Below the pieces are notes generated by a model, which ran no database searches, had not been told where the DNA came from, and saw only the letters and a list, made by a program, of their open reading frames with translations. From Schmidtea nova (lineage: Eukaryota), in assembly GCA_044892505.1 (NCBI GenBank), contig CM097883.1, positions 17,918,001-17,982,000 of the forward strand: a stretch of DNA of 64,000 nt, read 5' to 3'. Shown one piece after another: positions 29,348-58,294 of the stretch. The stretch's first letter is position 1. Each line of letters begins with the position of its first letter. The translations under genes were made by a program, and so were the position numbers.

Positions 29348-29894
29348 TGTAGTGCCTCTGCTTTATGTGTATTTATATTATATTATATATACTAAATTAA
29401 AATATACATATTTATAATAACTGTATATAAAATATTATAACAAAATTAATTCATTTGTTTTAATATCCAGTTTTTTGAATTAAAAAGAAATGCAGTACGC
29501 AGTGCAAGTCAATGTGGTATTCATTAAAATTTTGTCGATGTTCATGTTTATTTTATCATTCACAATAATTGGTGTCAGAAATGGAGTTACCTGCATCGTT
29601 AGTTGATGCTCTTAGGTTTCTTTCAGTCCTCATACACTCCGCGTACTTCGGCGAGGGCTATTGTAGTGCCTCTGTTTTATGCGTATTTATATTATATTAT
29701 GTATACTAAATTAAAATATACATATTTATAATAAACTGCATATAAAATATTATAATAAAATTAATTCAGTTGTTTTATTAATATAATCAGTTGCTTTACT
29801 TTTGAATTAAAAAGAAATGCAGCACGCAGTACAAGTCAATGTGATATTCAATAAAAATTTTTCGAAATTCGTGTTTATTTTATCAGTCACGATA
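29348..29894 (+). mobile_element. TRIM-like miniature LTR element
   Basis: Direct repeats at 29348-29567 and 29662-29894 both start TGTAGTGCCTCTG. The 94-bp interior starts with a PBS-like TGGTGTCAGAA (29570) and ends with purine-rich GGCGAGGG. No TSD. Confidence 0.6.
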
Positions 29895-29979: not shown

Positions 29980-30418
29980 CTAGCTTACCCATCGTACGTT
30001 GTTGCCATCTCAGAAGAAATTAAATTAAAAGAAACTCGTTATGATAACATTCAATTTACATTGTGTAATTATTATTGAAACATATTGAAAACATTTCAAA
30101 GTACCGTTTTAATTCTATTTATTTATTTGAATGCTTGTGGATACACGATATTTTTTGTTTTTCCGTCTGGTGCGTACACGAATAAATCAGAAGATTTTCC
30201 GACGCATTAGATGACCACATACAGTTGTCCATGTGAGAAGCAAGGATTCTCCAAATATAGTTCACACACTTGCAGTGATTGTGCATGTGCTTGTCGCAGC
30301 GAAAACTGTGGGTGGCTGGTCCAATATTTTAAAAAATGTTTTGCCAGAAACCTTTACATGAGTGTACTTAAGAACTTCTTAAAGTTTCAGGGCGTTCGGA
30401 CAGACAGACATTCATTTG

Positions 30419-30495: not shown

Positions 30496-30754
30496 TTTAA
30501 AACCATTGTTTGTTTTTTAGTCATGTTGCAACTGTACTTAATTACACAAAATGTGAAGAATATATTTAAATTTGAATAAGAATATATTTAAATTTGAAAA
30601 AGGAAAAATTGGACTTCATCATCACAACGATGGTTTCATTTTCAGATAATTCAATTGTCAATATTTCTTTATTATCCTGATTATTTTTCATTTTATAATA
30701 TATTTCTATTTTTTCCATTGTAATCTCGAATACCTTTTTTAGCGCTATAAGTGC

Positions 30755-31097
30755 CTATCTAACAGTTTCGTCAGTGGGAAATTCAGCAAAATGATGCAAC
30801 AGTGTCCTACCATTATGATTTCTCGCATTAATATCTGATTTATAATTACCTTTCAATGCTCGAATGAAGTTAGTTTCACAACCTAGCTCAGATATTACAG
30901 AAATAATTTGAAATACTTCTAAGTCAATTACCGGATTTAAGGTTCTCTCGGCTCCACAATAAAAAAATGCTATTTCATCTTTACTTTCAAAAAATAACTT
31001 TTTATGAATAAAAACTTTGACTGCAGAGTAAGTAGTCGTTTCATTCTCTAAGTCTACATATATGCAGACAAACATCAAGAATAATGCTGATGTGTTC
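30755..31097 (-). pseudogene. Ankyrin-repeat pseudogene headed by a spliced-leader sequence
   Basis: KSDINARNHNGRTLLHHFA is an ankyrin repeat. The frame stops at 30755 and is out of phase with the leader ATG. Confidence 0.65.
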
Positions 31098-31139
31098 CAT
31101 AAAAGATTATTTAAAATTTTAAATAGACCGTCTAACGGC
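31098..31139 (-). ncRNA. 42-nt planarian spliced-leader variant (leader exon only, no donor)
   Basis: GCCGTTAGACGGTCTATTTAAAATTTTAAATAATCTTTTATG has the same length as SL-1 and matches the recalled SL-1 at 32/42 positions. The first 15 nt are identical, it ends in ATG, and it is followed by GA, not GT. Confidence 0.75.
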
Positions 31140-32909
31140 TCACAATCGAGACAGTAAAAATCTCGTCATCTTTGGTTTTTCCGAAAGTGTACATCACAAT
31201 CACAATCCCATCAAGTTTTCTTTTATTAATAATGTTTATTTTCTTTTCTTTTCTTTTAATTCTAATTTTATGCCTTATTCATTTATTCGTTATAAGACCG
31301 GTGCGAACAGTGGTAATTGGTGCCAAATTGAAAGATGAAAACGAAAAAATAATTTTAAATAAATTATGGATTCCTTGGAGGAGCTAGAGCGAAAATACGA
31401 ATTAATAAATTAAATGATCTCACACGTTCACTAAAACCAAACTCCATTGAATTATATTAATAAATTTTATTTCTGGCAATAGTTATTATATCAAATATTT
31501 TTTTATACAGATGTAGCGAATATTATGCCTTCATATGCAATGCAAAAGGTTCCATTCAAAATTTCTTTAAACAATAACACAAAATTTCGGCACAGCCTTT
31601 ATCAAGTGTGTATTTCAATCGTTATATTAACTTAATTCTAAATACTAACCTTAATAATTTATTTTATATTTTATAATGATTTTAATGGATGAAAGTAAAT
31701 TTATTTTAATTTTCTTTTTAAGCATGATTTTTTTGTGCGAATTGAATGTTGATGGACGGTTTTTATTCTTTGATGTAAAAAGTCTCGGAAGCTAATCTTT
31801 GCAATGAATTTTTGAATCCATCTTGTAAAAAAATCGAATTAATACTGGGAGAAGAATATCGAGTACATATTTTTCAGGGGAAAATAGAAATATTGGACGA
31901 TTGTTTAAAACTATGGAAAGAATTGGAAAGATTTACCTCATGGAAAGTTGCAGAATAAATCATGCAGAAAAGATAAAGAGCATCACAGAAGTACAAATCA
32001 ACAATGTAGAACACGAAGGAATAAAAACTTTACCCGATGGAAAAAGAAGATGAAGAATTAATGTCAATTTCAGGAGAAATGATAAAAGAAAATAAATATA
32101 TTATTTGAAAGAACATGAGTTTAGAAGAAATAAGAAGGAAATTATTATTTATTAATGCTGAATATGGTACATTTGAAGACCATCTGATGATTCCATTATT
32201 TGTAGCAATTATAAATTATGCGGGAAAAATTATTAAAAATAGCTTTATTACACCAAGAGTAAAAGTTTACACTATACTACCTTCAGCCTCATCTCGAAAT
32301 CAGTCTGCTTAATATACAGATATACGAGACTGGCATTGGAAAAATTACTTGTTGGGCATGATCTGCTTCTAGAATGGAAATATCTTCTGTGGGACACGAG
32401 ATTTGACAATATCCAGTCATCGAACCAATGAAAACTACAATATGTAATGATTGATAAAAATTTAAGACATTGGTGAAAGAGATATGCAGAGAAAAAATCC
32501 TAACAGGCATTCACTTAATTTTCTAAGATGCAAAAAATTAATCAGGTGAACAATCCAGTCGAAAACAGGTGGAAAGAAGAAGACAATATCAAAAAAGTAT
32601 TCTTTAGAAGAATAGAGAATTGAAAAGGCAAACCAAAGAAACAATGTCTATGTATACTTATGAAACAACAATGACAGTGATCAATGACGTTACAAATAAC
32701 GTTACAACGGAGATATTTCTATATGTATCTGAAGAAAATATCACAATAACTGTTCAAAATGAGGAGTGTGGAATTGAAAGTAGAACCTGAACCAATAACG
32801 AAAAATAAAACAAATCGTAAACGCAAAACGACAGCCAGCACCGATTTATCAGAATTGTTGTGAAAAGATGCAATAACTGATTAAAATATGAAAAATAAAT
32901 TAAAACAAT

Positions 32910-56989: not shown

Positions 56990-57030
56990 CATATAAGATT
57001 TATATAGATTTCGATAAGACCGTCTAACGG
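56990..57030 (-). ncRNA. Planarian SL-1 spliced-leader sequence (SL RNA gene/pseudogene or retro-inserted leader)
   Basis: CCGTTAGACGGTCTTATCGAAATCTATATAAATCTTATATG equals nt 2-42 of the S. mediterranea SL-1 leader as recalled. It is followed by GT, but I see no clear Sm site or stem-loops. Confidence 0.82.
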
Positions 57031-58294
57031 ATTTCAGACTCGCCCCACAATCTATCACAGCAATCAAGCCCCACCTTTAACTATTTAATTTTTAATTTAA
57101 TTAATTTTTAAATATTTTATTAAGCGGGCGCGACCAACTTACATTTTTAAAATGTCTCGCTTTTCGATTATTGAAAATAAAACTAAACTTAACTTCTTCG
57201 GACAAAAATTACAGATGTAAATATAGGTTAAACGATCAGATTTTTTAAAAATTTTAGTTTATTTTGTTTAAATCAATTTCCTTTTCTGGTCCTCTCTAAA
57301 TGATAGTTATTTTATAACTTGTTACATTTACTTTTAAAACCGCAAATTATCTCAATTTTTAGAAAAATTGATAATCAAACAATATTGGAAGAGAAAATGA
57401 TGAAACGGTTCGACAGAATTGGGTTAAAAAATATAATAAACCTTCGCCAACTAGACTAAAAATCTACAGATAACGTGATAAATTTGAAACACTGGGCCTA
57501 TCAATAATGCACCGAAGTGTGGACGATTAGTTAATGTTAACAATAATGAAAAAGAGTTGGTTGATTATTTATCCAAAGTCCGCAAAAATTTAAAAAATAA
57601 TTTCAATCGAGTGTTTGACTGTGTTTTATCAGATTGACGCCAAATACAAACAATAAGTGCACTAAACACGGAAATATCAGAAATATATAATGTTTAATAA
57701 AAAGACGCAAAACCTGAAATGCACAGCAAGAAAAATTAAATTTGATAAAATTTGCATAAAAACCATCAATTGGAACCATAACCAGATAAATAACAAAAAT
57801 CCATCTTGGTTGTCTAGATGGTAAAATTAATTAAATAAAAATAAAGATAATCAAGAAAGCAAAAAAATAAAACCGATAATCATTATCTGAAAAAGAAAAG
57901 AAAACAATTGGTTAGAAAGATCAAATTGAAATGGGCAGATCGACAATGATTGGTCGAAAATTAACCGCCAAGAGTATAAATAACAGTGCAAGACACAGTG
58001 AGAGGTCAATTTTTTCATTTTACTTAACCGAAATTTATTATAATCATCTTTTGAGCCGAATTTTGATGAAATAGGGTAGTCAAAGAAAGTTTAAGCAGCA
58101 AAGTCAAAAAAGCAAATACAAGTGGGCGCAAAAGTAAAATAAAAAAAGACATAGTTGCGCTGAAAGAGGAAACATGACGCTCAGGTGTTGGTATTAGATA
58201 CACTTCTAATATCAGAAGGATTCTGACAGGCTGCAGACCCGAAAGGACCTTAATTTATATTCTTTGTAAAATAAATAAATAAATGTTCTATGAC

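Follow-up and report, generated by a model that had tools for sequence, protein, structure and literature searches.

On the minus strand of the window (the whole 64,000-nt stretch of Schmidtea nova DNA analysed here), a 42-nt sequence resembling a spliced leader (SL) lies at 31139..31098. It is preceded by a conserved head (31309..31140), which we refer to as class B, and is followed by an intron-free, ankyrin-like mRNA body, or cargo, that extends from 31097 to 30614 and whose 3′ end is undefined. Four public DNA-like sequencing runs of the same organism yielded contigs that cover 30504-31597 without differences, which rules out an assembly artefact.

An SL1-like leader without a splice donor

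Read from 31139 to 31098, the leader consists of a G and a 41-mer (CCGTTAGACGGTCT followed by ATTTAAAATTTTAAATAATCTTTTATG) that ends in ATG, 42 nt in total. As a reference we used the common leader of this genome, SL1, a copy of which lies in the same window at 57030..56990. The two sequences are identical over the first 14 nt (15 if the preceding G is counted), agree at 31 of 41 positions when compared without gaps, and share 10 of the last 11 nt, the ATG included. All 10 mismatches are confined to positions 15-37. These counts bear out the initial annotation, which described a leader that keeps the length of SL1, its first 15 nt and its 3′ end, with the differences gathered in the middle. 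The GA that it reported after the leader, in place of a donor, is likewise confirmed: bases 31097-31096 are GA, the sequence continues with GAACACATCAGC..., and the GT donor is absent.

A chance resemblance to SL1 is excluded. The 14-mer, with up to two mismatches allowed, is expected 0.09 times per window and was observed twice, and only 0.4% of the AT-rich 27-mers of the window agree equally well with SL1 positions 15-41 in the fixed register.

The junction and the intron-free body

The junction between leader and body (31096..31098, minus strand, ...ATG|GA) is of the trans-splice type, without a GT donor, and a paralogue of the body, L004, has its acceptor at the same point. Where the locus reads ...TTTTATG|GAACACATC, L004 reads ...AATAATATTTAG|GAACACATT, with an AG acceptor (...TTTAG|GAACAC). 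From this acceptor the L004 frame is open (EHIGIILDVGLH...), in phase with the ATG of the leader. The leader thus ends exactly where a related gene has its AG acceptor, in agreement with the post-splicing junction that had been proposed. The annotation had also pointed to a parent gene with an acceptor at this position; the acceptor is there, but the gene that carries it is a paralogue, 80-84% identical to the locus, and not the exact parent. A closer parent gene was not found, and a protein search of the genome matched the L004 paralogue only.

The body is colinear with the exons of L004/L005 (C2:138.08 Mb), L007 (C2:283.80 Mb), L008 and L006, at 71-88% identity in a search of the genome. At 30997..30998 (CATAAAAAG|TTATTTT, minus strand, as are the other two sites) L004/L005 have an 87-nt gt...ag intron that the locus lacks. 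At 30811..30815 (AGAAATCAT..GGTAGGACA) the missing sequence is a 111-nt intron of L007 (gtattt...ctacag), where L008 has an 836-nt gap, and at 30745..30746 (CTTATA|GCGCTAAAAAAG) it is a further L007 intron (GTAAGC...TTTTTAG). The breaks in L008 match the L007 introns in place, and the gaps are longer. Since three canonical GT-AG introns of the paralogues are missing at the locus, the body is a processed copy; the missing introns, together with the L004 acceptor lying exactly at the leader/body junction, support its origin as a copy of a trans-spliced mRNA. No poly(A) tail was found after the last recognisable exon (~30614), beyond which the sequence enters an (AT)n repeat (30504-30420). No target-site duplication was seen at the locus, and neither a primer-binding site nor a shared 3′ module was found downstream of the body.

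Coding state of the body

The ankyrin coding sequence of the initial annotation corresponds to a residual 107-aa open reading frame (ORF; 30755..31078, minus strand). Against Pfam this ORF gave a sub-threshold match to Ank_4 (E = 0.004; 17.9 bits, under the cut-off of 22.7). The spliced exons of L007 (GKTPLHYCAEFSTEDAARILIGTY..DIRDYNGKLPIDW), judged by eye and not by Pfam score, have what we take to be the usual ankyrin-repeat pattern. The label "ankyrin" for the body is reasonable but weakly supported. A protein word search with the 107-aa ORF returned no homologue.

Two deletions relative to the paralogues disrupt the reading frame. The alignment with L004 and the three-frame translation place a 2-nt deletion at 31054..31055 (minus strand), which shifts the frame opened by the leader ATG. 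The alignment with L007 and the translations place a 7-nt deletion at 30762..30763 (minus strand), and the second frameshift that it causes gives rise to the stop at 30755-30757. As each of the two deletions shifts the frame, the copy at the locus is, judged from its sequence, a pseudogene.

The terminal ATG of the leader opens a frame in two different cargoes, MEHISIILD... at the locus and MKKKIKENF... in an ORF that we read as FKBP-like at L035 (C1:11.735 Mb), a member of the young family described below. The start codon of both mRNAs seems to have been supplied by the leader.

A conserved head upstream of the leader and a sister copy

The class B head (31140..31309, minus strand) starts with TGTTCGC at 31309 and runs from TGTTCGCACC to ...CTCGATTGTGAG. 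BLAST aligns it to 12 other loci (L074-L084 and L010) with 68-81% identity and E values of 1e-7 to 1e-20, and it is 73% identical to the class B consensus. Class B loci have the head, then a leader-like stretch, then sequence that differs between loci. A sister copy on another contig, L003/L078 (C1:584.96 Mb), has the head, the leader changes and the ankyrin body in common with the locus, at 71-74% identity. The homology between the two begins at the TG of the head, which indicates that the whole unit of head, leader and cargo was copied together. As the ~170 nt of the head (31309..31140) recur in the sister copy and at the 12 loci, the inserted DNA begins upstream of the leader. This divides the earlier proposal that a full-length trans-spliced mRNA was reverse transcribed and integrated: the mRNA origin stands, on the intron loss and the acceptor junction, but the insert does not begin at the cap.

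The class B head probably represents the 5′ (U3-like) portion of an old long terminal repeat (LTR). The TG start at 31309 is the only LTR feature at the locus; a CA end, a primer site, a polypurine tract and a partner LTR were looked for in the window and not found. The element at the locus is probably truncated, as the unique stretch 30504-31543 is bounded by high-copy repeats and by the (AT)n tract.

The segments 31544-31867 and 29600-29680 are the high-copy repeats that bound the locus; their summed contig depth in the public runs is in the hundreds of thousands to millions, compared with ~10-35 in the unique stretch. At 30120-30217 of the window, 96 nt are replaced by an 18-nt stretch in the contigs of three runs; the cause is either a structural variant among the samples or a further copy of the 30005-30247 repeat.

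A young family with perfect leaders

The first 14 nt of the leader occur 1,423 times in the 1.25-Gb assembly, and there are 493 perfect matches genome-wide to the 32-mer that spans the remainder of SL1. At all 30 of the 14-mer sites sampled, diverse non-GT sequence follows the leader and a conserved 115-nt head (beginning TGGTCGCGCCCGC), here called class A, precedes it. Insertions of a leader without GT, a genome-wide count of which the initial annotation had suggested, are therefore abundant. SL1 followed by GT is found at only 39 sites, in multi-copy families conserved for hundreds of bases.

The class A head starts with TG; (ATT)n precedes it in about 22 of 54 loci, and a polypurine run (AAAGGGGGAGAA) stands directly before it in 7 loci. 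In the pair L036/L035, whose members lie 4,340 bp apart, the LTR starts with TGGTCGCG and ends with TTTTCCA. The 5′ copy reads ...TTTTCCA and then TGGTAGCAGAGC; the 3′ copy is preceded by AAAGGGG...GAA, ends ...TTTTCCA and is followed by (ATT)n, which flanks the element on both sides. We take TGGTAGCAGAGC to be complementary to the 3′ end of initiator tRNA-Met, and hence to be a primer-binding site. L069 provides a second example of the primer site. The TG..CA ends, the polypurine tract, the primer site and the flanking (ATT)n show that the class A head plus leader is the start of a true LTR, with the anatomy taken from 3-kb loci. Pairs of sites on the same strand, 4-6 kb apart, are numerous in the site lists. 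A non-LTR element targeting (TAA)n, a Penelope-like element and a hammerhead unit had been considered for the head, and were dropped on seeing the polypurine tract, the primer site and the TG..CA ends.

Among the class A cargoes sampled is an F-box/LRR protein, confirmed by Pfam. Others we take, from their unscored opening residues, to be an FKBP-like ORF, a CHMP-like start and a WD40-like start. Behind the same class A head a second leader type (...TTATCAATTACTCTTTTAATTTATG) is also found, which implies that a cargo can bring the 3′ part of its leader along. In L035 and L022 the internal region codes for a coiled-coil protein with no Pfam match and contains no reverse transcriptase, on which grounds the class A elements seen look non-autonomous.

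Several of the leader-bearing loci have arrangements of their own. At L021-L023 (C1:3,138,900-3,149,977) three head-plus-leader units stand in tandem with a period of exactly 5,532 bp and 99.9% identity. (ATT)n flanks the first of them, and the polypurine run precedes each of the other two; their cargo is the F-box/LRR protein mRNA, and the leader is cut after position 24. At L061 (C1:562.95 Mb) one (TAA)n tract holds two class A heads in head-to-head orientation, ~60 nt apart, which suggests repeated insertion into a single microsatellite. L046 (C1:48.32 Mb) and L048 (C1:74.65 Mb) carry a second, truncated leader-like stretch (...AATTAG|TGACTTATTGAAATCTATAC...) within the cargo, ~130 nt past the leader, and these nested leaders may reflect repeated rounds of capture or of trans-splicing. 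In class A loci such as L018, L024 and L036, degenerate G/T-rich repeats (TGGATTTTG or GGAATTGGATTTG) lie between successive pieces of host mRNA in the LTRs.

The window also contains a class A unit. On the minus strand, 56990-57136 comprises a class A head (T at 57136, then GGTCGCGCCCGC) and the perfect SL1 at 57030..56990, followed by GTGCTAAATGCG...; this sequence recurs in L056, L063 and L069, and in L069 it ends ~790 nt further on at TGGTAGCAGAGC. The SL1 in this unit is followed by GT, and its reading as an SL RNA gene was rejected in favour of an LTR of the young family, the L069 relative ending at the primer site. The commonest family with leader plus GT was also considered as an SL RNA. 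Its fold is unconvincing. It is conserved over more than 400 nt and a related family ends in a primer-binding site (L069), so these sequences are LTRs and not SL RNA genes. True SL RNA genes of this genome were not found, and Rfam searches at the gathering threshold (window) and at E values up to 1 (six loci) gave no match to an SL RNA, hammerhead or snRNA.

Class A and class B are laid out alike, with a TG start, an AT-rich middle and the leader at the end. When a class A profile was run against the class B heads with nhmmer, two members gave E values of ~1e-3, with high compositional bias, and the locus copy gave a non-significant E value of 6. We infer that the two heads belong to the same type of LTR.

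Distinct leader variant or decayed SL1

The initial annotation took the pattern of differences from SL1 as a sign of a distinct SL variant. The genome searches speak against this. With up to three mismatches allowed, the 41-mer occurs once in the genome, at the locus itself, and a degenerate 31-mer representing the inferred ancestor occurs in the 1.25 Gb only at the locus and in L078; neither copy has a donor or an SL-RNA body behind it. In 10 other class B loci the consensus leader is SL1-like. Identity of the locus leader to SL1 or to the class B consensus is 71-76%, and that of the neighbouring head is 73%, which amounts to ~25% divergence in both. The leader of the sister copy has four changes in its first 14 nt, which argues that these positions are under no constraint, and the argument from the clustering of mismatches is post hoc, since the locus would not have been noticed had its first 14 nt not been intact.

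The changes that the two sister copies have in common are another matter. Derived changes common to both were counted at 6 of 34 well-supported leader sites versus 7 of 118 head sites (Fisher p = 0.07; Poisson p = 0.017), and in their common ancestor leader positions 15-37 already carried 6-7 changes, against only ~6% change in the head. This excess weakly keeps the idea of a variant alive, at low odds, and we regard it as unlikely that the leader is a real, now extinct SL variant.

Alternative explanations

If a full-length trans-spliced mRNA had simply been retrocopied in the LINE manner, the 42-mer would be the 5′ end of the insert and a distinct, functional SL variant. The acceptor junction and the intron loss agree with such an event, and the variant it calls for draws on the sparing of the first 14 nt by the mismatches (P = 0.0075 under random placement), on the 6-7 leader changes common to the sister copies, which exceed what the head predicts, and on the second leader type behind one and the same head in the young family. 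However, a conserved head stands directly 5′ of the leader in the locus, in the sister and in 12 other loci, and the search for a poly(A) tail was negative. No further copy of the variant turned up in the 1.25 Gb, degenerate forms included, and what follows it is neither a donor nor an SL-RNA body; the four changes near the start of the sister leader and the post hoc nature of the clustering argument weaken it further. We consider a retrocopy of this kind quite unlikely.

It has also to be asked whether only the first 14 nt are leader, the next 27 nt being the retained 3′ end of the outron or intron of an ankyrin gene, left by partial processing or by DNA recombination, in which case the junction would not be trans-spliced. 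Positions 15-41 do align, with gaps, to the 29 nt before the L004 acceptor, with a score of 11 that was reached by 1 of 37 AT-rich acceptor-like controls. Yet the ungapped, fixed-register agreement of these positions with SL1 is itself uncommon (0.4% of AT-rich 27-mers), the leader as a whole has exactly the length of SL1, and 10 of the last 11 nt, with the ATG, are those of SL1. Moreover, the acceptor AG is absent in both copies, which read TG|GAACAC at the locus and TC|GAACAC in L078, and a retained outron is on balance very improbable. A living ankyrin gene with an SL-like first exon, or a living variant SL RNA gene, would fit the presence of the 107-aa ORF and the intact first 15 nt of the leader. 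It is hardly conceivable in view of the two frameshifts that break the frame from the leader ATG, the absence of a GT donor, an Sm-type body and an Rfam match, and the lack of a protein homologue in the word search; the public runs that bear the locus, moreover, are four DNA-like contig sets from one study, none of them recorded as RNA.

A model for the origin of the locus

In our view the locus is probably a decayed solo fragment of an old LTR, composed of the head (31309..31140), the leader (31139..31098) and the intron-free 5′ part of a trans-spliced ankyrin-like mRNA (31097 to ~30614), the host mRNA having been placed there by a leader-paired strand transfer. The analysis shows that the body is processed, that the junction lies at an acceptor, that the head is conserved, that a sister copy exists and that the young family has LTR features; the strand transfer, or template switch, we infer from the anatomy alone.

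According to this model, the leader at the locus would have been either built into the element or acquired by it. The ankyrin-like mRNA would by then have lost all its introns and received the leader at its usual acceptor, taking its start codon from the leader ATG. A cDNA that reached the 5′ end of such an mRNA in a retroelement particle would terminate in the complement of the leader. With the element's own leader lying just behind the LTR head, this cDNA could pair there in the manner of strong-stop DNA and be extended into the head, and the host mRNA would thereby be set directly behind head and leader. The composite would then have been copied at least twice (the locus and C1:584.96 Mb) and have undergone ~25% decay and the two frameshifts. 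The premise is that the RNA of the element begins or repeats at the leader, such that the end of the host cDNA would equal the end of the element's strong-stop DNA.

A jump at the leader would account for the fixed position of the cargo, the acceptor junctions, the use of the leader ATG and the stacked host fragments. Several points count against the LTR-fragment reading: none of a CA end, a primer site, a polypurine tract, a target-site duplication and a partner LTR was found for the locus copy, the profile link between the class A and class B heads is weak and for this copy not significant, and simple decay of SL1 does not predict the excess of leader changes in the ancestor of the two copies. 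A more far-reaching proposal is that the locus and its sister are survivors of an ancient, genome-wide, leader-guided capture in which the host leader served as the element leader (R-like), and that they may also preserve an extinct leader type from the captured ankyrin mRNA. We put this forward tentatively, as a possible but doubtful extension.

Relation to known systems and significance

NeSL-1, SLACS, CRE and CZAR are non-LTR retrotransposons that insert at a fixed site in SL RNA genes and carry their own reverse transcriptase. As in these elements, retroelement sequence adjoins spliced-leader sequence at the locus. An insertion of the NeSL/SLACS/CRE type was rejected, as the break lies at the 3′ end of the leader, host mRNA lies downstream, and there is neither a reverse-transcriptase ORF nor an SL RNA body. 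Transduction by retroviruses and LTR retrotransposons, and chimeric retrocopies made by template switching (e.g., U6-L1), join a host mRNA to a retroelement, and the chimera is then copied as a unit. The locus likewise has host mRNA joined to retroelement sequence and copied as a unit, presumably also through template switching. Unlike those chimeras, it has the join at a fixed point, the leader, and not at random microhomology, and in the young family the cargo is in the LTR and not between LTRs.

In dinoflagellates, SL-tagged retrogenes and processed pseudogenes with relict DinoSL sequences are well known (PMC5585692, PMC6050394; Slamovits and Keeling 2008, as cited in PMC12582326). The planarian loci resemble them in having a DNA-encoded leader directly before intron-free gene sequence, which marks a reverse-transcribed mature trans-spliced mRNA, and in the nested truncated relict leaders, seen here in L046 and L048. 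They differ in that a conserved retroelement head precedes the leader, leaving it inside the insert and not at its 5′ end, in that the unit of the young family lies wholly inside an LTR, and in that the host is an animal, a flatworm. In the genomes of parasitic flatworms, 597 discarded leader-bearing loci have been tied to LTR and LINE elements (PMC12582326). There, too, partial SL sequences lie in mobile elements, and they were read as integrated transcripts of SL-bearing retroelements. In contrast to those trans-spliced retrotransposon transcripts, a host gene follows the leader here (ankyrin-like at the locus, F-box/LRR and others elsewhere), and the position of the leader within the LTR is constant. 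The ta-TRIM solo LTRs of Echinococcus give rise to LTR-initiated transcripts spliced to a former trans-splice acceptor (PMC4558846). Both cases join a flatworm LTR to a host exon exactly at a trans-splice acceptor. The ta-TRIM fusion, however, takes place at the RNA level and at one genomic site, whereas that at the locus is fixed in DNA, intron-free and dispersed. Our literature search, which was not exhaustive, returned no description of host-mRNA cargo behind the leader in a planarian LTR.

The locus is by itself ordinary, an old, dead member of a kind of leader-tagged retrocopy. Such retrocopies are direct proof that mature mRNA is reverse transcribed in cells feeding the next generation, which in a fission-capable animal are the stem cells. 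The process that sets head, leader and cargo together has probably been long-running, since an old layer of class B copies, diverged from one another by ~25-30%, exists beside a young layer with hundreds of perfect leaders. The contribution of the locus is to show that the junction of the cargo is a real trans-splice acceptor, with a start codon that appears to come from the leader. If the strand transfer is true, the leader common to host mRNAs and the retroelement would be a built-in route for the duplication of gene fragments, and would also be a ready marker with which capture events could be dated and counted. If leader-guided capture is true, trans-splicing would be a systematic route by which the 5′ parts of host genes are copied and shuffled in planarians.
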